A stretch of DNA of 64,000 nucleotides, taken from the NCBI GenBank assembly GCA_965649765.1, contig OZ287748.1, positions 79,794,001 to 79,858,000 of the forward strand, in the 5' to 3' direction. Below the pieces are notes generated by a model. The model saw only the letters and a list, made by a program, of their open reading frames with translations, was not told the DNA's origin and ran no database searches. Each line of letters starts with the position of its first letter. The first letter of the stretch is position 1. The translations under genes and the position numbers were made by a program. The DNA is from Bispira polyomma (taxonomy: Eukaryota). Of the stretch, positions 2,568 through 63,049 are shown piece after piece.

Positions 2568-3585
2568 CTGTAAAGTAATAACAGAAAATTGTTTCATTAA
2601 GTAGACATTAAATTTAAACCCAAAAAGTTAGCAGTCCAACTCCACAAAAATGTAATTTTTGCGATATGTTTAAATATCATTTTTTAATATTTTACTGGAA
2701 TTTAATTGTTGCTGGCCATTTTTTTTCATTAAAAATTGTTTTTACTTTAAAGTTTGTTTTAGAATTGTATTAGCAGTGTTATTAATAAAAATAATATTCC
2801 CAGGGACATTTGCGTTCTAATAGGATGGCTTTGTTTTTGAGGAGCAGCTAATTGTTTACTTTTAAGTGTTTTAAGGCAAAATGTGAAGATTAAATTTGTT
2901 GTGTATGGAGAGATAAAAGTATGTAGATACTGATGATAATAAAACTGGAGAAAAAAGGATATATTAAAGCTATAATATTTAATGAAAGTTTTTTGAACAA
3001 TATCACTAAAAAATATGGTGTACTAAAAAATTAAAGAATACTGTGGCTGAAAAAGTGGGCCTTGGTGCTGAATTAATTAAAAAGAAGTACATGTAGGTTA
3101 CTGACAGAATTCTTGTATAAACACTAGGAAAGTCTTTGGAAGCAGACCACAGAGAACAATTAGAAAATACATGTGTGAAGTGGTGAACTAATTAAAGTAA
3201 GGTGTTACATAGTATTAACACTTTAAATAGGAATAAAAGTTCTGTTTGAATGAACAAAAAAACAGATTTCTTTGAACATGTATGTATTTGGAAATGCATG
3301 TGGGACCAAGACAGAATTATAGAATATACACTAAAAGGAACAGCCTGCAAAACAGGCCAGAGAACAATAGAAAGTACAAGACTAGTGTGAAGTGGAGAAC
3401 TAATTATAGTTGGGAAAGAACTTTTCAAATAAGAGGAAAATAAAATTTGTGTTTAAACTAACAAAATATCCAAAGAGATTTAAAAATATAGATATTTTGC
3501 CCATTTCATATTTATTTATTTGCTATAAAAGCAGTTCTGATAAAAACCTATTTGGGAAAATATAATATCAGGATTATAAAAGACA

Positions 3586-4791
3586 ATGAATACACCAAAG
3601 AGACCTAAGGCAGACATGTCGTTCTCTCCTGAACAATTACTGCCCAGCAAGGAATATTTTAAAGAACTGTTTAGGGAAGTCTTAGATGAAAAATTTAAAG
3701 AGTACCTGAAGCCTATAAATAAGGATATTAGTGATTTACAATCTGGACTGAAAACTATGAAAGATGAGCAAGCAATAGTTGTGAAAGAATTACAGGATGA
3801 AAATGTCAAGTTGCAACAGCATATAAAAAGATTAGAAATGTTTCAGAGAAAGAATAACCTGAGGCTTTTTGATGTTCCTGAGGAGAAAAATGAAAACCTT
3901 GAAGAGAAAATAATTAACTTGTGCAACAAATATTTGCATCCTTCATGTGCCTTGAATAGTCGTTCATTCGAAAGGATACACAGGACTGGACCACTTATAA
4001 AGGACAGGAGCAGAACAGTGATAGCAAGACTGTCTCATTTCAAAGACAAGATTAATATTGTAAAACTGCGAAAGCAACTGATTGATGTTGAACATATCAA
4101 TGTTGCAGACGACTTCTCACCACAAGTAGAAAAACAACGTAAATTACTGTATCCAGTGATGACTGCTGTTAGGTCAAAACTTGGAAAAGAAGATAGATCA
4201 AAAATTTTCTTGAAAGAAGACCAGTTGATATTTAAAGGGTTATCATACCGTGTAGAAGACTTGCACAGATTACCTGAGGAGCTGAATATCCAGAAACTGT
4301 TCACTCCAAGAAAGAACAACATTACAGCTTTCTTCACAAGACACAGCATGTTGTCGAATCATCATCCCTGCAACTTTATGGTAAACGGAACACGCTACAC
4401 AAGTATGGAAAAGTTTTTGTTCACTTCTCTTGCTAGGTTGTTCCAAGATAAGGAGTTAGTGCAAAGGATTAGCAACGAAAATGACCCAGTGGAAATTAAG
4501 AAAATGGGAAAAAGAATGAAGAACTTCGACAAGTCTGTGTGGCACACAAACATTGAAAATATTCTGCACCAAGGACTGGCAGAAAAATTTTCACAAAATC
4601 CTTTATTGGCATCTGGACTACTGGCAACTGAGGATAGCATCATTGTGGAAGCAAACAAGTTTGACAGTGTTTTTGGGATTGGGCTTGCTTTGGGTGATCA
4701 AAATGTATGGAATCAAGACAAATGGCGTGGGGACAATCTAATGGGGAAAAGTTTGATGAAAGTGAGGGACCTGCTGAAACAAGGAAAGTAA
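3586..4791 (+). CDS. LINE ORF1p: coiled coil + L1-type RRM/CTD + C-terminal NADAR (YbiA-like) domain
   Basis: L1 ORF1 motifs RKNNLRLFDVPE, ERIHRTG, VIARL, ADDFS..V...R. NADAR motifs in aa ~247-398: FF..S.LSN.HP, SME, KFSQN, LLAT, IVEA...D..FGIG, GDNLMGKSLMKVR. Confidence 0.93.
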   Translation: MNTPKRPKADMSFSPEQLLPSKEYFKELFREVLDEKFKEYLKPINKDISDLQSGLKTMKDEQAIVVKELQDENVKLQQHIKRLEMFQRKNNLRLFDVPEEKNENLEEKIINLCNKYLHPSCALNSRSFERIHRTGPLIKDRSRTVIARLSHFKDKINIVKLRKQLIDVEHINVADDFSPQVEKQRKLLYPVMTAVRSKLGKEDRSKIFLKEDQLIFKGLSYRVEDLHRLPEELNIQKLFTPRKNNITAFFTRHSMLSNHHPCNFMVNGTRYTSMEKFLFTSLARLFQDKELVQRISNENDPVEIKKMGKRMKNFDKSVWHTNIENILHQGLAEKFSQNPLLASGLLATEDSIIVEANKFDSVFGIGLALGDQNVWNQDKWRGDNLMGKSLMKVRDLLKQGK

Positions 4792-5324
4792 CTCTTTAAG
4801 ACACTATAATAGTATTTGTTGTAACATATTTCTAATATTTATATAAATATCAGACACTAAAATAATAATTTTTGTGACATATTTCAAAGATTTATAGATA
4901 ACAGTAATATTATGCGTGCAAAAGATTCACAAAAAAGACATCAAAAATTATTGATATAATAGATTTTAATATATCTTTGATGCTAAAACAAAAGACTGAG
5001 TAGATATTATTTAAAAGTGTTGACATATTGAAAATGAGTAGCTTAATAGACATATCACTGAAAGGCACTTTATAATGCAGGTATGCAAAATTTAAAATAG
5101 ACATGTATGTGTAAGTATTTAATTTCCAATTGTTGATACACGTAAGTATTTAATCTAAAACCAACGACTCATTTAAAAAAAAAAAAAAAAAAAAAAAAAA
5201 TTTGGAATAAAAGTAGATGCACTATTGACATGTCTATTATACAAGTTACTTAATTCAAAATAAAACGATACATGTATGAGTATGTAATGCAAAACTAATC
5301 ACAAAATCCCTGTTTGCGTAGAGA

Positions 5325-5396
<72 letters not shown>

Positions 5397-5928
5397 TAAT
5401 AATATTTTGTATATAGTTATAAAGCAAAACCTAATTCAAAACAAACCGATACATGTATGTTTGCTTGAATGTGTTATGTAAAACTAATGATACACTAAAA
5501 TCCCTGTTTGGAGATTTTGACTCACAATAGAAGCTGTATTTAAACATAGAGACAATACTATTTAAGGTTATCACCATAAGAGTAAAAGGTTTCGTTTAAA
5601 ATATTTGTACTGGGCACAGTAACTATCTTGAAACATATCTCATCCCAGTTTTGGATAGAATGGACAGGTGAAGGGGTACTATTACCCTCTATTATTTTAA
5701 ATTGGTTATTTCATTAAGAAAACAAAAAATATTGATGCCTATAAAACACTTTGTTTCTGAAACTATGAAGTTGCCTTTTGTGTTTAGTGTTTATCTGTGT
5801 ATATTATGTGTTTTATGTGTGGTAAACCTTGATATTATGATCCATTGTAATAAGTTAAAATGTGTCACAGTTTCTGGAACCAAAACTCTGCCTACTCAGA
5901 TGAAGATAGATACAGATAACTTTTATAG

Positions 5929-6864
5929 ATGAATATACCAAAAGATTCCATATGTATCAACTCTTTCAATTGTAGAGGACTAAGAGAAAACAAAAAGAGA
6001 AATACTGTCTTTAATTGGCTGAAATCAAAACATTTTGGGGTAACAATGTTGCAGGAAACGCATTCATTGGAAGCTGACGAAATAAAATGGGCAAAGCAAT
6101 GGGATGGGGAAATTTACTTTTCACATGGTACTAATCAAAGTAAAGGTGTAGCTATATTGATACCGAAAAATCTGATAGAAAAGATAAAGATTGCTAAAAT
6201 TGAAAGAGATCAACTAGGTAGGGTTATTATTATACATTGTGAAATCCAAAGTAACCATTTAACGCTTGTAAATGTGTATGCACCTACGAAAGATAAATCT
6301 GGTTTGCAACTCGAATTTTTACATAATTTAAAGGAAATGCTTGAGGAGAAGAGTGACACAAATATAATCATCGGGGGAGATTTTAATACTTATTTAAACT
6401 TTAACTTAGATAAAAGAGGAGGTCAAACAGAAACTGAATCAGAATATTCTAAACAATTGTCTATGTTTGCGGAAGAACTTAGTTTAACTGACATCTGGAG
6501 AATTAGAAACCCAACAGAATTAAAATTCACAAGAAGAGAAAACTCAAGATCTGGTTTGGTGCAATCAAGACTTGACTACTTTTTAACCTCTAGTCAAATA
6601 AATTATCAGATCTCAGATTGCTCTATTAAACCGGGTTTTAAATCAGACCACAGCCTTGTCAAACTAAAGCTACAGCTTATTCATACTCAGCCGAGAGGTA
6701 AAAGTTATTGGAAGTTTAACAATAGTTTATTACGCGATAGCACCTATGCAAGCTTGGTAAAACAAGAATTGCAAGATATATCTGGTAATGAATACTTAAA
6801 AAATAAAAACACTCTGTGGGATTTTGCAAAATGCCAAATACGCAGTAACTTTATCTTACTGTAA
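5929..6864 (+). CDS. LINE ORF2 N-terminal part: APE-type endonuclease (frameshifted near 6845)
   Basis: SFNCRGL, LQETH, NVYAP, GGDFN, SRLDYF and SDH motifs, followed by the WKFNNSLL linker. Confidence 0.93.
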   Translation: MNIPKDSICINSFNCRGLRENKKRNTVFNWLKSKHFGVTMLQETHSLEADEIKWAKQWDGEIYFSHGTNQSKGVAILIPKNLIEKIKIAKIERDQLGRVIIIHCEIQSNHLTLVNVYAPTKDKSGLQLEFLHNLKEMLEEKSDTNIIIGGDFNTYLNFNLDKRGGQTETESEYSKQLSMFAEELSLTDIWRIRNPTELKFTRRENSRSGLVQSRLDYFLTSSQINYQISDCSIKPGFKSDHSLVKLKLQLIHTQPRGKSYWKFNNSLLRDSTYASLVKQELQDISGNEYLKNKNTLWDFAKCQIRSNFILL

Positions 6865-9718
6865 ATCACTTTCTAGAAAAAATAGAGAAAAAGAAAACAA
6901 CTTGTTCAAAAATATAGAAATACTAGAGAGGGAAATATTAGAAGATAAAGAAAAACTCCAGGAATATTATAAAGTGAAAGGGGAATGGGAAGAAATTCAA
7001 ACTGAGAAAGCTGAAGGTGTAATGTTAAGGTCAAAGGCACAATGGGTGGAAAAGGGTGAAAAAAATACCAAATATTTTCTAAATTTAGAAAGAAGAAACT
7101 ATAACACAAAATATATAAAGAAATTATTAACAAGTAACTCAACTGAGTTGACAAAACCAGACGACATTTTAGCAGAAGAAAAATCCTATTATCACAACCT
7201 TTACTCAACTCGGGTGAATGATGAACAAGGACTATACAAAGAATTTTTAGACAGTACACCAAGACTAAATGATATTGATAAACAGATTTGTGATGCTCCT
7301 TTAAAGCTTGAAGAAATTTCAAAGGCTCTAAAGCAATTAAAAAATGACAAAACTCCAGGTAGTGATGGCTTTACCACAAACTTTTATAAATTTTTTTGGC
7401 CTGATATCAAACTTTTATTATTTGACAGCTTTAAGTATTCTTTTGAACACAAACTTTTATCAAATGATCAGCGAAGAGGCATACTTAATCTAATACCCAA
7501 AGCTAATAAAGATCTGCGCTATTTGCGAAATTGGAGACCGGTAAGCATTTTGAACACAGATTATAAGATATTGACTAAATCATTAGCAAATAGAATGCAA
7601 CTGGTGTTACCTAGATTAGTTCAAAATGACCAAGTAGGTTATATCAAAGACAGATATATTGGTGAAAATGTTAGAATTATTGAAGATATTATGTCATCTA
7701 CAAATCTGAGACACATTCCAGGATATATAGTACTTATTGATTTTGAAAAAGCTTTTGACAGTGTGGAATGGTCATTTTTGTTTAAGACACTAAAGACATT
7801 CAATTTTGGACCAAGTTTTCTCCAGTGGACTGAAATATTTTACAAAAAGATTCAATCTTGTGTCACAAATAATGGGTATCTTTCAGAATATTTTGAACTG
7901 AGCAGAAGCATAAGACAAGGATGTCCTTTGTCTGCACTTCTTTTTATTTTGGTAGCAGAAGTTATGGCAATCAAGATCAGAAAGAATGAAAACATAAAAG
8001 GAATTACTGTTGAAAAAAAGGAATACAAAATTTGCCAATTAGCAGACGATACCACCTTGTTTTTGAGTAATATTGACTCTCTTGTTCAATTGATATCGGT
8101 GCTTGTGAAATTTCAAAATTGCTCAGGTTTAAAGATAAATCTAGAGAAATCTGAAGTAATTCCAATTGGAACATGCAAATTTAAAGATATAAAGTTACCT
8201 AAAGCAATAAGTAAAATACACATCAATAAAAATGCTTTTAAAACATTGGGTATTTGGTTTTCATATAATTTAAATGAATCAACCCATCTGAATTATGAGA
8301 ATAAATTAAAAACTATGGAATCTATAATAAATATTTGGCATAGCAGAAACCTTTCTTTGAAGGGAAAAATATTAATCATGAAATCGTTAATCCTTCCACA
8401 AGTGAATTATGTGTTATCTGTGACTTATAGTCCCCTAAATATATTACAGAAAATAGACAAATTGTTATTAAACTTTCTCTGGGGAAATAAACCCCCAAAG
8501 ATAAAAAGAAGTGTCATAATAGGAAATTACTCTGAGGGCGGCCTTAAAATGCCCGATATTTTTACTATACATACAATATCAAAAATAAAATGGATAAAAA
8601 AATTGATAACCGAAAACAAAGAAAGAAATTGGCAACCTTTATTTCTGTATCTTTTCAATATAAAAATGAACAGACTGAAAAAGAAATTACCTCATGATCT
8701 AAGAAATAAATGCCTCACCAGCTTTCACAAACAGCTTTTTGACTGTTGGGAAACATTTCATGGTGTCACACCAGGAACAGTTGAGGAAATATACAATGAA
8801 TTCATCTTTGACAACAAGTTCATTTGTTCAGGAAAAAAACCGTTAGAAGTAAAGGATTTTAAACTACCAAAAGGCAATTTTGAAGATTTATTGGTGAAAG
8901 ATTTAGTATCAAAAGCAGGTCCCTTTATAACACTAGCGGAATTTAATGCCAAATATAAAGTTGCTCTTGACAGACTGAGCTATAACAAGGTCATTACATC
9001 TATACCTCAAACTTGGAAAAGTAAAATTAAAGGAAAACAAATATCTACAAACTTGGCTATAATCAAGGCCATAGCAATCACTGTGAGGGGAAGATTATCA
9101 GAATTTTCAAAAGTCAATAATAAAGCACTTTATTGGATTGCCACAGGTACAAAGATACAAGAACCAAAAGCAGTGGAAAAATGGATAGAGTCATATCCTT
9201 TTCTAGAAAGTGCTCCATGGCACAATATTTTTAAAGCGATTCATGTAATATCTAATGAGCCTTATCTTCACTCTTTTCAGTATAAAATTGTAAACAGGAT
9301 TCTCAATTGTAATAACAATTTACATAAGTGGAAAATCAAAGAATCTGCAGCTTGTTTATACTGTGATCAAATAGACACTTTGGAACATCATTTATTTTTC
9401 TGTAGGCATAGTAAAAATTTCTGGGATAAGTTTCAAGCATGGCTCTATAATATTTTAGTAATGAATAATGAAGCTGATTTAACAATATGTGAAGTTTTAT
9501 TTGGTTTCGAGATGGATAAAAATAAAAATATTTCTTTTAATTATTGTAAAAATCTTTTAATTTTACTGAGTAAATGGTACATAAATATAAGAAGGACTGA
9601 AAATAAACCTTTAGTTTTTGATGAATATCTAGGGATTATAAAATCCAAAATCATAACCTATTTAAGTGCAATCAATGAGATAAAAGCAGATGAAAGAGTT
9701 GATACAGGCAATCAATGA
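6824..9718 (+). CDS. LINE ORF2 remainder: reverse transcriptase + C-terminal CCHC zinc knuckle
   Basis: KTPGSDG, NWRPVSILN, DFEKAFD, RQGCPLS, QLADD, CLYC..DTLEHHLFFC. The true end is probably 9788, since a 40-bp duplication truncates the frame. Confidence 0.93.
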   Translation: MQNAKYAVTLSYCKSLSRKNREKENNLFKNIEILEREILEDKEKLQEYYKVKGEWEEIQTEKAEGVMLRSKAQWVEKGEKNTKYFLNLERRNYNTKYIKKLLTSNSTELTKPDDILAEEKSYYHNLYSTRVNDEQGLYKEFLDSTPRLNDIDKQICDAPLKLEEISKALKQLKNDKTPGSDGFTTNFYKFFWPDIKLLLFDSFKYSFEHKLLSNDQRRGILNLIPKANKDLRYLRNWRPVSILNTDYKILTKSLANRMQLVLPRLVQNDQVGYIKDRYIGENVRIIEDIMSSTNLRHIPGYIVLIDFEKAFDSVEWSFLFKTLKTFNFGPSFLQWTEIFYKKIQSCVTNNGYLSEYFELSRSIRQGCPLSALLFILVAEVMAIKIRKNENIKGITVEKKEYKICQLADDTTLFLSNIDSLVQLISVLVKFQNCSGLKINLEKSEVIPIGTCKFKDIKLPKAISKIHINKNAFKTLGIWFSYNLNESTHLNYENKLKTMESIINIWHSRNLSLKGKILIMKSLILPQVNYVLSVTYSPLNILQKIDKLLLNFLWGNKPPKIKRSVIIGNYSEGGLKMPDIFTIHTISKIKWIKKLITENKERNWQPLFLYLFNIKMNRLKKKLPHDLRNKCLTSFHKQLFDCWETFHGVTPGTVEEIYNEFIFDNKFICSGKKPLEVKDFKLPKGNFEDLLVKDLVSKAGPFITLAEFNAKYKVALDRLSYNKVITSIPQTWKSKIKGKQISTNLAIIKAIAITVRGRLSEFSKVNNKALYWIATGTKIQEPKAVEKWIESYPFLESAPWHNIFKAIHVISNEPYLHSFQYKIVNRILNCNNNLHKWKIKESAACLYCDQIDTLEHHLFFCRHSKNFWDKFQAWLYNILVMNNEADLTICEVLFGFEMDKNKNISFNYCKNLLILLSKWYINIRRTENKPLVFDEYLGIIKSKIITYLSAINEIKADERVDTGNQ

Positions 9719-10011
9719 GATAAAAGCAGATGAAAGAGTTGATACAGGCATCAAAAATATATTTAATTTGATTTTGAGACATTTGTAGACAGATTCTTGG
9801 TTCCAGAAATAGTAGATATATGATAATAGTAGATAGGTTTTACCACCCACTGTTAATGTGTTGTGTATTTGTTGTGTATTTGTGACTGTACTGTTGTGTC
9901 TTGTGTAACCTTTGTTTTGTGTATTGTTATGTATCACATTATTCTGCTGTTCCTGTCGTAAATAACATTATAGAAAATAAAAATATTTAAAAACAAAAAA
10001 ACATCCCCAGT

Positions 10012-10050
<39 letters not shown>

Positions 10051-10081
10051 AAAATAATATTCTGCTTTTACAGATTAAATT

Positions 10082-10335
10082 GGGGCCGCGGTGGCCTAGT
10101 GGTTAGCAAGCATTGCGCTTCACAATCACTGGTCTCTCACCTCTGGGCGGCGTGAGTTCGAATCCCGTCGATGCCTATGTGGGAAAGGTGGTAGTTCCTT
10201 ACTGTGGGCCGCTGGTGTCAGTGCAGAACCTTGACCGACTGTATGCAGTGTTTCCTCCAGCGTTTCCAACTACTCGTCCCAATATAACCTACTAAAAGGT
10301 ACTGGAGTGGTCGTTAAATATCCAAATTCAAATTC
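10082..10335 (+). mobile_element. tRNA-derived SINE (copy 1)
   Basis: A box TGGCCTAGTGG, B box GTTCGAATCC, (CAAATT)n tail; near-identical to 53211-53466. Confidence 0.9.
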
Positions 10336-10336
10336 T

Positions 10337-10824: not shown

Positions 10825-11575
10825 TTTTAGACTATGGTGACGTGGTCTTAGGCTACTGTGACATGGTCTAAGGCTTATGAAATGGTCTAAGGCCTAGACT
10901 ACTGATTTTGAAACCATCGATCATGGTCTGAAAGTTTTTGGGTTTAGGAAAAATCTTTGACTCTATCTTTTCAAACTCACTTAGACTATATGACATGGTA
11001 TTTAAACTACTGATGCATCATCTTATGCAACCGAGACATGGTATTAGGCTAGTGTGACATAGATATATGCTACTGCCATTTGGTTTTAGGCTACTGAGGC
11101 ATGATGTTAGGCTACTGAAACATGATCTTAGGCTACTCATACGGGATCTTGGGCAACTGATACATGTTCTTAGGCTATGTGACATGGACTTTTGCTACTG
11201 ATGCATCAACTTAGGCTACTGTGACATGGTGTTACATGAACTTAAGTTAGGGAAATGGTATGCTTTTACGATGCTGCAACTGGGTCTTAGATCCCTGTGA
11301 AATGGACTAATGTGACAAGGTTTTAGGCTACACAACATAGTCTTAGGCCACAGTGATATGATGTTAGGCTAGTGTGAGATAGTCGTGGGTTATTGTGACA
11401 TGATCTCAGGCTATGTGACATGGCCTTACCTTATATGACATGGTCTTAGAGTACTACAACATGGTTTTATGCTATGTTACATGGTCTGAGGCTAGTGTGA
11501 CAGTGACTTATGTGACATGTTTAGGCTAGTGTGACATGTAACCAGGCCACCTGACATGGTCTTATGCTCCTGTAT
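10825..11575. repeat. Degenerate ~21-bp minisatellite (TTAGGCTACTGTGACATGGTC)
   Basis: Dozens of imperfect tandem units are visible. Confidence 0.85.
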
Positions 11576-27394: not shown

Positions 27395-30210
27395 TAACAT
27401 AACATAACATATTGCATTTGATATTGCGCATTTTTACAATTCTGTTTCAAATGCGCATTTACATGTAAGTCTACTTGTAATACTTGTCAAAGAGATATTT
27501 CTTAACTTTTTTCCTAAACAGTTTTAGATTGTTACAGTCCTTGATGTTGCAGGGTAACTCATTCCACAATGATGGGCCGCTCACACTGAATGATCTTGAT
27601 GCAAAAGTGTGTCGGCTTGTTTTAGGTACATGAAGATTGTTTGAGAAAGTCGAGGATCTGAGTCCTTCTCTGAACACTGGTTTTTGAGTCAGCAGGTTTT
27701 GCAAATATTCTGGAGCATTTTCTTGCGGGCAATTGTACACAAGCACCATAATTAAGCGTCCCTTGAAAAGGGCGCTTATTTAGTTTCACCCCTGGTTTCC
27801 TCACCGCCGCCGCCGCATGGTCTTCCTTGAATATCTCCTTCAATATTATCTGCATCAAAATTATTTTTGGCAGTTCTCTTAACCAGGAGTGGGAAATTTT
27901 TTTGATATTCTTGGCTTTGAACTTTGGCCTACTTAAATGTCAGGTGACCCTGGGGGTGTAAAAGTGCTTGTCACTAGGTTTTCTCAAAAAGTATTCATCA
28001 TAGCTTAGTTAAATTTGGTATGTACCTTGGTAAGGCAATTTTCAGGACAGGAGACGCTGATGAGATTAATCGGATGATAATTGACCGATTGCCAACCGAT
28101 TGATTTTTATTGAAATGCGAAAAATCGGTACTTTTTTGCTATCTCGGAAACTATTGGGATTTCGGCTTTTTCTTGGTATAAGTTATTCATCTACTTTTTG
28201 ATTTTATGTATGATGTAAAAATTTCACAGTTCTAAGTCCAGTACTCAATGAGTACCGAGTACTTCAAACGAGTATTTTGCTCTATTTTGCTCTATCTTGC
28301 ACTGTTATCAACTTTTCTTTTGAAGTACTTGTCATAGTTCAATGAAATTTTCCATGCACATTGCAAATACCAAAGCATAGATGTCCGTAAATTTTTAGAT
28401 CAATCTGGTGATAATTGACTGATTGACAGGGTCGATCAATCATACAAAATGGGGAAAAAAATGTGTTGATGGGTGCTTTTTTGAGCGTGTGAGGATTTTT
28501 TTTATTTTTAATTTTAGACCAGTACATGTAGCGCGTAACTTTTAAAGAATAGCCAGAATTTTTATTTATTTTTTACCCCATCCAAAAATATGCGATCGTT
28601 ACTGATATAAAACGATTTTAATTTCAAAAATTTTAAAAATTAAGGTTTTTTTTTAAATGTCCATTATCTCTGAAACGGTGCTAGATAGAGCGATTTCGAG
28701 CTCATTTTCGACCCACAGGGTTGATTTTGCTTGTACATAAATTTTTAAGAAATTTTCAATTGTGGCGGCCATCTTGAATTTCTGCGTCTTTTTCGAAAAT
28801 GTCAATTATCTCGGAAACGGTGCTAGATAGAGCGATTTCGAGCTCATTTTCGACCCACAGGATTGATTTTGCTTATATGTAAACTTTTAAAAAAATTTCA
28901 ATTTTGGCGGCCATCTTGAATTTCAGTATCTTTTTTGAAAATGTCAGTTATCTCGGAAACGGTGCTAGATAGAACGATTTCAAGCTCATTTTCGACCCAC
29001 AGGGTTGATTTTGCTTATAAGTAAACTTTTAAAAAATTTTCAGTTTTGGCGGCCATTTTGAATTTCTGCGTCTTTTTTGAAAATGTCAGTTATTTCGGAA
29101 ACGGTGCTAGAGAGAGCGATTTCGAGCTCATTTTCGATCCACAGGGTTGATTTTACTTATATGTAATCTCTCAAAAAAATTTTAATTTTGGCGGCCATCT
29201 TGAATTTCTGGGTCTTTTTCGAAAATGTCATTTATCTTGGAAACGGTGCTAGATAGAGCGATCTCAAGCTCCTTTTCGACTCATAGGGCTGATTTTTCTT
29301 TTATGTAAATTTTTATAGTAATTTTTGATTTGGGCAACCATCTTCAATTTCTGCGTCTTTTTAGAAAATGTCTGTTATCTCGGAAATGGTGATCCTTTTC
29401 GAGCTTACATTGACCAAAAGTGCTGATTCTGCTTATATGTCAACTTTTAAACAATATCAAACCTTGTACACTAAACAATTTCATTATTATTTCAACTTTA
29501 GGGACGCTTCGTTTTTGTTATCAAAAATCGTATTCTAGTTTTGAATTCAATCCTGGCAGCAATTGGTAGCCAGTGAAGTAGCTTTCTGGATTCAGTCGAG
29601 CTTTCATATTTTGTCCTGTTAAGTACTAATTTGGCAGCTATATTTTAAACTCTTTGGAATTTCTTGATTGAGTTTTGTGGTAAACCAACAGTACACTATT
29701 GCAAAAATCGAGATGTGACATTACTAAGCCTAGAACTAGTGTGTGTGTTGCTTCCGTTGTAAGGGTGGATCTGATGTTTCTAATTCGGTGAATGTTTAGC
29801 ATAGCTACTTTGCATTTATGGGTAATATGTTGTTTGAAGTTGAGGTGGTTATCCAAATAGACTCCTAGATACTTAATGTCAGCGCTTGAATTAACATCTT
29901 CACCATTCACTTTTAAACTATGTAAGAAACATTTTTTGAGTTGCTTTGGATGGCCAAACAGGATGAATTCAGTTTTAGAGCTGTTCATTTTAAGACGGTT
30001 GGAATCCATCCACAATTTTATGTCCTCAGCACAATTTTCTAATGATCTAAGAGTGGTGGCTTCTGCTGAGATGTTGTTGGCTGAGAATGACAATTTGATT
30101 GCATGGTCGTCTGCATATCCGTGCAGTGACATATCAGCTGGAACTACGTATTTCAGGGTACTTGCATAGCTAGAGTGGAGAGTTGGACCTGCACAACTGC
30201 CCTGCGGTAC
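27395..30210 (-). mobile_element. 5'-truncated L2 LINE interrupted by a Helentron-associated element
   Basis: RT motifs VPQGS, HGYADD, KYLG; C-terminus SFSVSGPSLWNELP..KKYLF; (ATGTT)n tail. The frame ARIEFK-I-MVLVY is restored when 27753-29539 is removed. Confidence 0.9.
27753..29539 (+). mobile_element. Helentron-associated non-autonomous element (HINE/DINE-1-like), copy A, with a 142-bp tandem array
   Basis: 5' subTIR AAGCGTCCCT within a hairpin, (GCC)n, 142-bp repeats at about 28655-29450, 3' subTIR AGGGACGCTT, CTAGT terminus; inserted in a T run without TSD. Confidence 0.85.
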
Positions 30211-30528
30211 TGAGACATATACACATGGTGACATGTGTATACACTTAACATATACACATGTTGTACTGGTATATTTATTATTCAGGTTGATTTGTATATG
30301 TTTTTAGTGGTAATGATTACAATTTGCATTTAATTGTTAAAGATTTTACTTGATAATTTTTTTTCTTTGTAGCAATGTTTCATAGACCTACATTCTCTGT
30401 GGCTGAAGCCCAAAGCATTACATTGGAGATTTTTGTTGTTTATTTTTATTGCAAGTGAAATTTCTGTATTTAACAAAGCTTTTTGAAACTTTATAACTGA
30501 CTATGGACCAAAAAGGGTGAAAATCGGG

Positions 30529-49559: not shown

Positions 49560-51629
49560 ATGGCCACAAGTCACCTTAGTGGTTACCACACTCAGACGTT
49601 TGAAGACAGCTCGCAGTTTGAGACCTTGGAATGCTGCCTGCTCTGTTTGGATACATACGATAAGCCCACACAGCTCCACTGTAAACATGTGTTCTGTGAG
49701 CAGTGTCTGCGTCAGTACACACAAATTTATGGCCAACAGCAGGGGCAAGATAACGGGGTAGCTGTATCTTGCCCCATCTGTAGTAAGAAGACACCACTGC
49801 CAGATGATGGATTGGCTGGTTTGAGTCATTCCATCTCAAAATGTATGGACCAACTGTCCACAGCAGAGACGCAGCACAGATGTGAGTCTTGCTTATATAA
49901 TAACAAGACAGAAGAAGCGGAGTACTACTGCAACAAATGCTTCTTGAATTTCTGCCAGACCTGTAAAAATGCTCACCACAATCATTCAGTGTTTTCTGCC
50001 CATACTGTGATTCACATTTCCAATAAGGATTCTATCAGCTTGTTCTGTGCCCAGCACGGCAGGCTTCCTAGTCTCTACTTCTGTACTGACTGCAGCATTC
50101 CAGCGTGTTCAGTGTGTGTGATACAATTACACAACAAACACAGCAATACTCGTCTCAGTGAAGCACTAAGTGTGAGGAGAGCCAATCTCAAACAATCCCT
50201 CAACAAGCTCGGACCAAAGCTAGAGAAACTCGCGGTCAAACTAAGAAAAGTTAGTCATGATTTTACTAGTCATAGGGACAGTGTGTTAGTAAGCGAAGCT
50301 TCAATGGATTCCATGTACCCCGAAAGTGAAGGGCAACAAGAAATGATTCCTCTGAAACTGTGTGAAGACATCAATGACAATGTTGAGTCTAAAATACGGG
50401 TCATTGATAGGGAAATCAAGAAATTACAGATGCTCTATGATTTAGTGTCCAAAAGCCTTGAAATGTCCCAGTCCAAGAAACTGCTTCTTGTATACGATGC
50501 CCTGATGTCAAGGTTACAAACAGTTATTGACACCGAACTAGAACAGCTCCAGAAAGACATCGCATCTAAAATTGAAAGGGAACTTGAAAGCTCAATCCAT
50601 GTCAATGGAAATCATACCGTTTCTTCTAGTTTAAGTTTCAACAGTTTAAATGAACGTCGCAGTATATCTATGACTGGAACATCAACCAAAAGCTCCCCCG
50701 CTCATTCTCAGCTTTCTCTCGAAGGTGGAACAATGGATGGTGACACAGATCACTTCATGCTCTTTAAGCCCAAACTCACTTGGAAGATTGAGAAGACAAG
50801 GTCTGAAGACCTTTGGAATCCATCAGGCGTTGCTTTTCACCCTTCTGGTAATCTTGTGGTTGCTGAATATGATGTTGTTACTGAAAAGAACAATCGCTTA
50901 CGACTGTACGATGCTGGGGGCAAATTGAAGGGCATGATCGCCACTGGCCTCCTCAAACCTCTTGGAATAGCCGTGAACAGAGACGGTAACATTGCAGCCA
51001 CAGACTGTGCTGGAAAAAGGGTGAAGATCTTTTCTCCAGATGGTCACATGCATTTAGAATTTGGTAAAGGTAATTTTGGTTGGCCCTATGGATTGGCCTG
51101 TAATAGCAAAGGTGAATACATTGTTTCAGATACATTTCACGATACTGTTTCAATATTTTCGCGCGATGGAAGAAAGGTGAAAACTTTCGGCTCCACAGGC
51201 AGTAGTCCCAGTCAGCTGAGGAATCCTTTCCATATTACTGTTGATAGCAGTGACAACATTGTAATCTCTGACTATGGAAACAAGTGTATCAAGGTGTTCG
51301 ACATCAGAGGAGAGTTTATGAATGTCTATTTATCTGATTCACAAAGGCGAAAATCGACCGAGTCCGGTAAGCCAAGTAGGAAAAGACGCAAGCTGAAGGG
51401 TCCACGTGGCATTGTGGTCGACATTCGAGATAATACCCTGGTTGCTGATGACAGTGGCAGGGTATGTCTATTTGACCCTAAAGGGACATACACACGAAAC
51501 CTGTTGACTGATGAAGACACAGTCAAGTATCCTGAAGGACTTGCTACAAACAGAAACGGTGACCTGGCCATCACGGAATGGAACACGAACAATATGCTCT
51601 CAATTAAAGTATTCCATATGTATGAATAG
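49560..51629 (+). CDS. TRIM-NHL E3 ubiquitin ligase (RING, two B-boxes, coiled coil, NHL propeller; TRIM2/3/71-like), single-exon CDS
   Basis: C3HC4 RING CLLC..CKHVFCEQC..CPIC; two B-boxes; NHL repeats PSGVAF, PLGIAV, PYGLAC, PFHITVD, PRGIVVD, PEGLAT. Probable 5'UTR acceptor at 49337-49338. Confidence 0.93.
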   Translation: MATSHLSGYHTQTFEDSSQFETLECCLLCLDTYDKPTQLHCKHVFCEQCLRQYTQIYGQQQGQDNGVAVSCPICSKKTPLPDDGLAGLSHSISKCMDQLSTAETQHRCESCLYNNKTEEAEYYCNKCFLNFCQTCKNAHHNHSVFSAHTVIHISNKDSISLFCAQHGRLPSLYFCTDCSIPACSVCVIQLHNKHSNTRLSEALSVRRANLKQSLNKLGPKLEKLAVKLRKVSHDFTSHRDSVLVSEASMDSMYPESEGQQEMIPLKLCEDINDNVESKIRVIDREIKKLQMLYDLVSKSLEMSQSKKLLLVYDALMSRLQTVIDTELEQLQKDIASKIERELESSIHVNGNHTVSSSLSFNSLNERRSISMTGTSTKSSPAHSQLSLEGGTMDGDTDHFMLFKPKLTWKIEKTRSEDLWNPSGVAFHPSGNLVVAEYDVVTEKNNRLRLYDAGGKLKGMIATGLLKPLGIAVNRDGNIAATDCAGKRVKIFSPDGHMHLEFGKGNFGWPYGLACNSKGEYIVSDTFHDTVSIFSRDGRKVKTFGSTGSSPSQLRNPFHITVDSSDNIVISDYGNKCIKVFDIRGEFMNVYLSDSQRRKSTESGKPSRKRRKLKGPRGIVVDIRDNTLVADDSGRVCLFDPKGTYTRNLLTDEDTVKYPEGLATNRNGDLAITEWNTNNMLSIKVFHMYE

Positions 51630-60492: not shown

Positions 60493-63049
60493 TCATAAAC
60501 AATATTTTATTGGAACAAAGCAATCAGGCAAAATCAAAAAGATTATTATAAAGCCTTCTCGCAGGAAGATATATATACAAAAGAAACAAAATAGAAAAAT
60601 AACACAGAATGACGAATGAAAAGATGAGAAGGTGTGTGGGCACTGTAGTGATCAAAAAAAAATTCCCTTAAAAATTCCCTTAAAAATTCTTGAACTGTTC
60701 GAAATTTTGTCTGGTTTTGTTCAAATGTCAAGTCAAGGCTACCAAATAATAGAGTTTCACTTGAAACAGCAGGAATATCATATAATTTAGCTAACATTAA
60801 CTGTCTCGGTATGGCATAGTTTATACAATCTAAAAGGAAATGTGTATTATTTTCATCAGATAGGCCACAGTCACAAGTGCAATTGCTCAAAACATGTAAA
60901 TATTTTGTGAGGTGTTCCTTAAGAGGGCTACAGTTCATGCGCATTCTAGCATGAATTGCATTCCAGTACCGTTCACCTTCAACAAACAATTTTTTACGGA
61001 ATTTAACTAGTTTTTCATTACACTTAAATTGTCGTTTGCGTAATATGTATTTGAATGTAGAGAGAGTTGTTGCATATTTGAGTGAGTTGTCAAGTTCATT
61101 CCAGAGTTTTATCCCAGCTGGAATGAAGGAACTTTGATGCATATTTATTCTACATTTTGGAACCTGAAAATCATGTCGGTTTCGAAGTTGATATGTGATG
61201 GTACTTCCAATTGTAGGAGGAATTAAGTTTTTTAGATAACTCGGAGCTAAATCATGTGTAATTTTATACATCATTATCAACACATGCTGTTCACGCCTAC
61301 TGCATAAATTTTGCCAGCCTAGTTCCTCAAAGAGTGAGCGAATGTTAGATCTAAAAGGAGCACCAGACACAAGCCTCATAGCATTAACCTGAATACTATC
61401 TAGTTTGCGTAAATCAGAGTGGCTAGCTCCAGCCCAAACAACATCACCATATTCCAAAATGGGTCTAATAAAAGCAAAGTACATTTTTTCCAGTGTAATT
61501 CTGCTAACTTGATATTTTAACTGCTTTAGCATGTTCAATCGCTTTCCAGCTTTAGTACTGATTTGATCTATATGCATATGCCAGCCCAAGTTATCCTCAA
61601 GCCAAAGCCCTACATGTTTATGTTTAGCCACATTAACAATTGGTGTGTTGTGTAAGTATAACCTTGGATTTTCACTTTTGTGATGTTTGAGGCCAATAAT
61701 CATTGATTCGGTTTTTGAAGGATTGAAAGTAACAAGCCAATTCTGAGACCATTTTTCAATATTTTTTAGGTCCTCATTTAATTTAATTGCTGAATCTATT
61801 CGATTGTCAACTTCAATAAAAAGGCAAGTATCATCTGCAAAAAGTCTTAAGCTACAATTTTTTACAACTTCTGTAATATCATTAATAAAAACCAAAAACA
61901 AAAGAGGCCCCAGTACTGACCCCTGTGGTACCCCAGCAAATATTTTGCTCCAGTCTGAAAATTTACCATTGATAACAACTCGTTGCACCCTATCTTTTAG
62001 GTAATCTTCAAACCACTGGAATAATGTACCACTGATACCCCATTTCTTCAGTTTGAATAACAATCCCCGATGCCAAACGCGATCAAAGGCTTTAGAAATA
62101 TCAAGGAACACAACTCGTATTTCTTTGTTTTGAGATACCGCTGAGCAAAATGTATCATATATTTCAATTAATTGGGTGATTGTTGAGGAACCTGGCAAAA
62201 AACCCTGATTGCTAAACTGATAGGAAGAAATTGTCTTTAAAATGATTATATAAGTATTTAAAAACTATTCTCTATACCATCTTTCCCAAAATACTGAGAA
62301 GAGATACAGGTCGATAGTGTCCTAACACATTCTTGCTGTCTTTTTTGTGTAACGGTACTACATTGGCTTGTTTCCACAGCTTAGGAACTTTCCCTGTAGA
62401 CAATGAAAGGTTGAATAATTTTGTTAATGGCTTTACCAATGAGCGATTTGCTAGTTTTATAAATTTAGGTGAAAGACCATCGGGGCCATATGATTTGTTA
62501 CAGTTAAGTATTGATATCTGGTCAAGTACTTCTTTTTCTGACACTACAATGTTGTGTAAAACACCACCCAATGGGGTGTCATCAACTGGTAATTGAGCCT
62601 GCTCTTCTCTTAATATACTAGCTTCGGCAAAAAAAGAATTAAAAGCATTTGCTTTTTCTTTATCATCAGTTATCAGAGTACCATCCTGAGATAACATAGG
62701 GGGAATAGATTTATCAGTAGGCTTTTTCAAAAAAGATTTTGCTAGTTTAAAGAATGAGCCATTATTGAAATTTTCTGCATTAAGTTTCATATAGACCTTA
62801 TTTAGATGGTCATTCTTACAGCGACTGACTTCACGATAATAAAAATTTCTTTCATGCCTATAGTTATCCCATGAAGAAACGGTATTTGCGCGTTTTGCCT
62901 TAGAATATAGGCGGTTAACTTTACGTCGTAATCTACGTAGATAGCCATTGTAAAAAGGTTTATCAAAAGAACGGACTGTCACTTCCTTATGTGGAATACA
63001 TTCTCGAGCTGATAGTAACAATTTTTCTGTAAATAACTTACATGATTTT
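60493..63049 (-). mobile_element. 5'-truncated CR1-group LINE (RT + C-terminal Zn finger), frameshifted
   Basis: ORFs 62272-63021 and 60546-62198 with YRPVSLL, DISKAFD, GVPQGSVLGP, LFADD, CDCG..HFLLDC; AATAAA at 60506-60511; 11-bp TSD TATTGGAAATC at 60482-60492 and 63050-63060. Confidence 0.92.

Follow-up and report, generated by a model that had tools for sequence, protein, structure and literature searches.

A long interspersed nuclear element (LINE) of Bispira polyomma encodes an ORF1 protein (ORF1p) in which a predicted L1-like RNA-binding core is fused to a NADAR domain. The element lies in a 64,000-nucleotide stretch of contig OZ287748.1 (assembly GCA_965649765.1, positions 79,794,001 to 79,858,000, forward strand). 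This whole stretch is referred to below as the window, and all positions are given in its own numbering. A large radiation of LINEs descends from an ancestor with this fusion, and comparison of coding sequences shows that purifying selection acts on the NADAR domain as strongly as on the RNA-binding core. In the clade to which the window's element belongs, the active site lacks two canonical residues and retains the catalytic acids.

ORF1 is an intact open reading frame (ORF) of 401 amino acids (aa) at 3586..4791 (+), and three other copies encode an identical (100%) protein. Pfam assigned aa 252-397 to NADAR (PF08719) with an E value of 2.5e-37 and a score of 129 bits, against a gathering cut-off of 35.1, and the match spanned positions 9-162 of the 163 in the model. 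The PDB sequences closest to ORF1p in a phmmer search were a NADAR of Phytophthora nicotianae (8bau_A, 3.4e-14) and E. coli YbiA (2b3w, 7e-4). An AlphaFold2 (AF2) model of ORF1p built on a 28-sequence family alignment had a mean predicted local distance difference test score (pLDDT) of 89.9 and a predicted template modelling score (pTM) of 0.71; pLDDT was above 90 in the NADAR domain. The model consisted of a long helix (aa 22-88), an alpha/beta unit resembling an RNA recognition motif (RRM; 91-175), an alpha/beta unit resembling the L1 C-terminal domain (CTD; ~179-240) and the NADAR fold (246-400). When the model was searched against PDB with Foldseek, it matched 8BAU (E 8.6e-11, template modelling score (TM) by target 0.74) and YbiA 2B3W (TM 0.76). 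Pfam, phmmer, Foldseek and the family alignment together placed the domain at aa 246-401 (4321..4788, +). It is a member of NADAR superfamily PF08719, YbiA subfamily. It differs from the DarTG1-type antitoxins (BC4488 subfamily), since position 355 is Glu, the residue that defines the YbiA subfamily, whereas the DarT1-linked subfamily has Asp there; its neighbours are ORF2 and the untranslated regions (UTRs), with no ADP-ribosyltransferase gene.

The remainder of ORF1p was recognised by structure. Behind the NADAR structures, the same Foldseek search listed nine chains from the ORF1p trimer of human LINE-1 (2YKO/2YKP/2YKQ; E at best 1.4e-6, TM 0.68, ~215 columns), and then L1 RRM-CTD and RRM structures (2LDY, 2W7A). 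The modelled coiled-coil helix (aa 22-88, 3649..3849, +) aligned with the trimer 2YKO, and the RRM and CTD-like region (aa 89-245) occupies 3850..4320 (+). No Pfam match (including Transposase_22) was obtained for aa 1-246 at E <= 0.1, and phmmer found no PDB match for this part; the likeness to L1 ORF1p is therefore structural only. According to the model, the core is that of a type-II (L1-like) ORF1p, a protein of the nucleic-acid chaperone kind, with coiled coil, RRM and CTD in that order, as in human LINE-1 ORF1p (2YKO/2YKP). However, identity to the human protein is 15-20%, the Transposase_22 signature is missing, and an extra enzyme domain of 155 aa follows the CTD here. A first-pass annotation, made from the sequence alone, had described an uninterrupted 401-aa ORF1 whose N-terminal part has a coiled coil, RRM and CTD of L1/Tx1 type, with a complete NADAR domain behind them. 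All of these were recovered: the reading frame directly, the core by the AF2 model and Foldseek, and the NADAR fold by PF08719, phmmer and Foldseek.

A motif, KRxxxEMSFSPE, which contains a Ser-Pro site and is kept in most lineages, was also seen at aa 5-17 of ORF1p (~3598-3636). The Ser-Pro site resembles the proline-directed phosphorylation sites of human ORF1p.

The element is 7.2 kb long, poly(A)-tailed and flanked by a 15-bp target-site duplication (TSD), ATAAAAATAATATTC. The 5' TSD is at 2785..2799 (+), and the same 15-mer, the 3' TSD, is at 10048..10062 (+) directly after the poly(A), where its first bases are indistinguishable from the A tail. Between the two repeats lie a 5' UTR (2800..3585, +; delimited by blastn against sister copies L002-L014 and comparison of 5' ends), ORF1, an inter-ORF spacer (4792..5928, +), ORF2 (5929..9718, +) and a 3' UTR with poly(A) tail (9719..10047, +; tail ~10013-10047, A35). 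ORF2 encodes an APE endonuclease, a reverse transcriptase (RT) and a zinc-binding domain (Pfam Exo_endo_phos, RVT_1 and zf-RVT). Its best PDB relative was human L1 ORF2p (1e-69), and R2 proteins scored 6e-20 or weaker. Because of this ORF2 content, the higher score of L1 ORF2p than of R2 proteins, the A35 tail and the 15-bp TSD, the element is an L1/Tx1-superfamily LINE, an assignment made at superfamily level. Elements of the Tx1 clade often insert at specific targets. No shared target sequence was found in the flanks of 11 sister copies, and there was no sign of site specificity. ATAAAAATAATATTC brackets the whole unit, which agrees with the earlier proposal that the NADAR domain lies inside the TSD-defined element and is mobile with it.

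ORF2 of the window copy is interrupted. Owing to a 2-bp deletion at 6845 it is split into the parts 5929-6864 and 6824-9718; further lesions are one additional A at 9711 and, at the end of ORF2, a tandemly duplicated 40-bp segment (9668-9754). The two missing bases were present in all seven of the sister copies examined, and also in the contigs that dominate all four public DNA-like read sets (98-100% of summed depth). The deletion is private to the window copy. One sister copy had an ORF2 open for 1273 aa, and the depth of the four read sets showed the 5'-to-3' gradient of a 5'-truncating LINE. The window copy is an ORF2-dead member of a young, multi-copy LINE.

The spacer is 1.1 kb, AT-rich and without an ORF; that of human LINE-1 is 63 bp. 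It was kept in all sister copies, and relatives from other assemblies had spacers of 0.65-1.1 kb, so its length does not stem from an insertion. Within it are tracts of A26 (5175-5200) and A63 (5330-5392), which might cause premature polyadenylation and so give ORF1-only transcripts. At the 5' end, sequence common to the sister copies began at ~2815-2832 of the window. The first ~15-35 nt of the full-length copies (window, L002-L014) occurred in at least four unrelated variants upstream of the shared start TGTTTTTGAGGAGCAGC, which suggests variable extra 5' nucleotides or alternative 5' heads.

The source genome (1.04 Gb), searched in six frames, gave at least 107 scored matches to the fused protein (from 2,360 first-look candidates), most of them covering aa 1-401. 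Identity ranged from 100% down to 36%, and many matches contained no stop codon. Twenty-one intact ORF1s from separate genome sites fell into at least 14 lineages with 32-60% pairwise identity. A word-indexed protein search found 25 relatives in other assemblies, where the order ORF1-NADAR, ~1-kb spacer, APE-RT recurred. When 1.84 billion cluster representatives (50% identity) were searched with a profile, 5,391 matched at E <= 1e-30. Among the best 150 of these, ~140 were 330-530 aa long and matched end to end, and the others were short fragments or proteins with several NADAR domains. In ESM Atlas, clusters of 415-489 aa whose members all have NADAR carried the label Annelida wherever they were labelled. 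A second organism had copies ~94% identical. A fusion unique to one copy, a case that the first-pass annotation had considered, is at odds with the more than 100 full-length matches, the at least 14 lineages and the presence in other assemblies. The top-scoring relatives of the NADAR half (P0057, 4240 aa; P0058, 1075 aa; P0080; P0061) were of another kind, having 3-7 NADAR domains in tandem and nothing else recognised by Pfam. These may be host genes, or gene models that merge several LINE ORF1s.

Substitution rates in the two halves of ORF1 were then compared. Between lineages, synonymous divergence (dS) was saturated (the proportion of synonymous differences, pS, was above the Jukes-Cantor limit, or dS was about 2.8-2.9), and pairs within a subfamily had too few differences for a meaningful ratio of nonsynonymous (dN) to synonymous divergence. 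NADAR dN between lineages was 0.21-0.32. In six of the eight divergent pairs it was equal to or lower than that of the RRM and CTD, and in the remaining pairs the two values lay within 0.013 of each other. Because dS is saturated and NADAR dN is low, the dN/dS ratio (omega) is far below 1, a value that can be read as an upper bound only. In the family alignment, which reaches down to 25% identity, 15 of the 16 invariant columns were in the NADAR half, including E275, W319, K334 and E355. Neutral evolution of the domain, which had also been allowed for, does not fit this comparison, which points to purifying selection.

The active site was compared with that of 8BAU. The lysine assignment is based on the ungapped alignment to 8BAU (E275-F286; ~352-370) and on the K-bearing members of the family; the alignment to E. 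coli YbiA is gapped and ambiguous near the lysine. ORF1p shares its NADAR fold with 8BAU and YbiA (TM 0.74-0.76) and keeps the equivalents of 8BAU E43, K75, W89, E125 (the Glu that defines the YbiA subfamily) and D130, namely E275, K305, W319, E355 and D360. K309 and F314 retain the basic and aromatic character of R79 and Y84, respectively. In contrast, K50 is lost (L282), W133 is changed (F363), and R93 and D86 are not conserved; 8BAU is moreover a stand-alone protein, whereas the NADAR domain here is fused to a predicted RNA-binding protein. E275 and E355 were invariant in all 45 family sequences and D360 was present in 43 of the 45. W319 and K334 were invariant and K305 nearly so across the 28-45 family members compared. 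The first-pass annotation had named E275, K305, W319, K334, E355 and D360 and had noted FGIG (F363) and LA (L282) in place of the usual residues, all of which was correct. Its description of an intact hydrolase holds only in part: the acids E275, E355 and D360 are kept, but the replacement of the canonical Lys by L282, which it had treated as cosmetic, and of W133 by F363 altered the site.

K50 touches the adenine and pyrophosphate of ADP-ribose (ADPr), and without the corresponding K95 the E. coli C7 NADAR neither hydrolyses ADPr-guanine efficiently nor gives rescue from DarT1 toxicity; W133 is another pyrophosphate contact in the P. nicotianae NADAR (PMC11543638). Lysine at the 282 position was present in 28 of 43 family members and absent from 15, and Trp at 363 occurred only in the deepest lineages. 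The most distant lineages had K and W, an intermediate set had K and F, and the set of the window's ORF1p (at least 45% identity) had L/I/Q/E and Y/F. In a quick IQ-TREE maximum likelihood tree of 43 sequences, with support from the Shimodaira-Hasegawa-like approximate likelihood ratio test (SH-aLRT) and a midpoint root for drawing only, a branch with 99% SH-aLRT separated the W-less sequences (30 rows) from the rest, and the K-less sequences formed one supported group of 15 nested inside. The K and W changes were polarised as losses because the canonical state is seen in other NADARs. NADAR dN in the K-less clade was similar to that of K-bearing pairs, E275 and E355 were unchanged, and D360, W319 and K305 were nearly so. 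Since the acids are kept and the domain evolves no faster than in K-bearing pairs, the K-less clade probably still catalyses, with altered recognition of the ADP moiety.

L1 ORF1p shows cis-preference, binding the RNA that encodes it. If the ORF1p described here behaves in the same way, its ribonucleoprotein (RNP) would be loaded with many copies of the putative glycohydrolase, because ORF1p coats its own RNA. The most likely task of NADAR would then be to remove, by hydrolysis, ADP-ribosyl-type (N-ribosyl) adducts from the template RNA, from cDNA being made or from the target at its nick. Host base-modifying ADP-ribosyltransferases might place these adducts, or they might come from PARP signalling at the nick, and if left in place they would obstruct reverse transcription or flag the intermediate. 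Activity of PARP2 at nicks of L1 integration reportedly promotes retrotransposition, so ADP-ribose chemistry at the target would be nothing alien to LINEs. We infer that the LINE NADAR may well be a remover of ADP-ribosyl-type adducts on RNP-handled nucleic acids, a reading to which we give about an even chance.

The known activities of the superfamily are consistent with adduct removal. Hydrolysis of guanosine-ADPr on DNA or RNA has been shown for YbiA-subfamily, eukaryotic and phage NADARs (PMC11543638, PMC11125620, PMC12945103). In vitro, guanosine-ADPr is a substrate of NADARs of the DarT1-linked, sigma70-linked, YbiA and phage kinds alike, with unequal rescue in cells (PMC11125620), and cytidine-ADPr is reversed too by some NADARs, one of them from sponge (PMC12945103). 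The NADARs of T4-like phages and of invertebrate nidoviruses, described below, are further precedents. Three points weigh on the other side. L282 stands where the Lys needed for efficient ADPr-guanine hydrolysis (K95 in E. coli C7) is expected, and F363 where the pyrophosphate-contacting W133 is. The source papers name no natural substrate for NADARs that are not linked to DarT. A search of the genome for a host base-ADP-ribosyltransferase, with PF01375, was unmatched, but it was uninformative because the controls were unmatched too, and pierisin/CARP-1 were not searched.

A role in countering an ADP-ribosylation defence, the inference of the first-pass annotation, is plausible by analogy with T4-like phages, which use an orphan NADAR-type antitoxin against DarTG1 (PMC11825919). 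In its strict form, the host, its microbes or its viruses would ADP-ribosylate G or C in retroelement RNA or cDNA as immunity, and NADAR would solely erase the mark, in the manner of viral macrodomains and phage NADARs. Besides the phage precedent, the independent gain of NADAR by Ectocarpus Gypsy elements and invertebrate nidoviruses fits a recurrent parasite need, and the stepwise change of W to F and then of K to L/I/Q/E on well-supported branches could reflect an arms race. However, such a host defence is not known in animals; pierisin and CARP-1 are secreted or stored toxins without demonstrated retroelement restriction; and the source genome yielded no transferase, although the PF01375 search just mentioned says little on this. 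The conservation of NADAR is also purifying, not visibly diversifying. We consider this strict form unlikely.

Alternatively, NADAR might act not on bases but on NAD- or ADP-ribose-derived groups at RNA ends, such as 2'-phosphotransferase/RNA-ligase products or ADP-ribosylated 5' phosphates. Processing of RNA intermediates has been proposed for the domains of oyster Tx1 and Gypsy elements (PMC12477816), and a similar proposal exists for RNA-virus NADARs. In nidoviruses, NADAR is accompanied by domains of the macrodomain, Tpt1-like and 2'-5' RNA ligase kinds (PMC11848433), and the adenine and pyrophosphate contacts lost in the window's clade fit a substrate other than full ADP-ribose. The element, however, encodes no RNA-repair partner domain detectable by Pfam, and every NADAR tested so far acts on base-linked ADPr. 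An RNA-end substrate thus seems quite doubtful.

The loss of K282 and W363 could instead mean that catalysis has disappeared from the window's clade, the domain being kept for ADP-ribose or nucleotide binding, folding or RNP assembly. This would agree with the inactivity of the K95A variant of the E. coli C7 NADAR (PMC11543638) and with the K-less sequences forming a single supported group of 15 nested among K-bearing ones. However, E275, E355, D360, W319 and K305 are invariant or nearly so in that group, its NADAR dN is no higher than that of K-bearing pairs, and keeping catalytic acids would be unusual for a mere scaffold. We give a non-catalytic role little credence. A copy-specific chimera, a captured host exon or an assembly artefact is refuted by the occurrence of the same junction in more than 100 copies, at least 14 diverged lineages, other assemblies and independent read sets, and by the TSD around the unit.

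The ORF1-NADAR fusion had been put forward as novel, a claim that does not stand. Repbase ORF1s of several Crassostrea gigas Tx1 LINE families appear to be YbiA-family NADARs, for which processing of an RNA intermediate was proposed, and the same study found NADAR in one Ectocarpus Gypsy lineage (Genome Biol 2025, PMC12477816). By the paper's description, the oyster elements have the same fusion of ORF1 with a YbiA-family NADAR in an invertebrate L1/Tx1-superfamily element. The account there consists of one paragraph and a supplementary alignment, and no other paper linking NADAR with LINEs was found in the literature searched. The present analysis adds the fold-level identity of the ORF1p core, shows how large and deep the radiation is, estimates selection, and describes the conserved long spacer and the derived K-less/W-less site. 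Other parasites carry the domain as well. NADAR has been inserted repeatedly into invertebrate nidoviruses, often beside macrodomains (PMC11848433). The NADARs of T4 gp30.3-type phages, nidovirus pp1a/pp1ab and Ectocarpus Gypsy Pol are, like that of the LINE, parasite-borne and presumed to protect or process nucleic acids. They differ in their carriers and fusion partners, and experimental support exists in the phage case only; phage NADARs also have His at the E125 position (PMC11543638), where ORF1p has Glu.

The accessory domains of ORF1p are a guide to the challenges that a LINE meets in its host. The retention of NADAR across a LINE radiation, together with its independent gain by long terminal repeat (LTR) elements, phages and nidoviruses, argues that ADP-ribose-type marks on nucleic acids matter to the genetic parasites of animals. 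More speculatively, the ADP-ribosylation of bases in nucleic acids might be an unrecognised animal restriction of retroelements and RNA viruses, which would explain the presence of NADAR in lophotrochozoan-type LINEs; W363F, followed by the change of K282 to L/I/Q/E, would then mark adaptation to an altered adduct or evasion of a host inhibitor. We regard this extension as a long shot. LINE NADARs with and without the canonical lysine are natural, easily expressed material for seeking the physiological substrate of the family. Many of the 'NADAR proteins' listed for invertebrates, molluscs and annelids among them, probably stem from LINE ORF1s and not from host genes.

Several other features were found in the rest of the window. 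Directly after the 3' TSD, at 10082-10336, is a repeat that recurred at 93-95% identity in unrelated loci (L015, L030). It is probably a short interspersed nuclear element (SINE), and its head looked tRNA-like by eye; Rfam and tRNA (ARAGORN) scans of 1-12 kb reported nothing, including at this repeat. Degenerate 20-21-bp tandem arrays of ~10 copies each occupy 11007-11502. A single-exon ORF of 689 aa at 49560-51629 (+) encodes RING, B-box and NHL repeats (TRIM-NHL type). RVT_1 fragments of other retroelements are located at 60546-63021 (-) and 29638-30234 (-).

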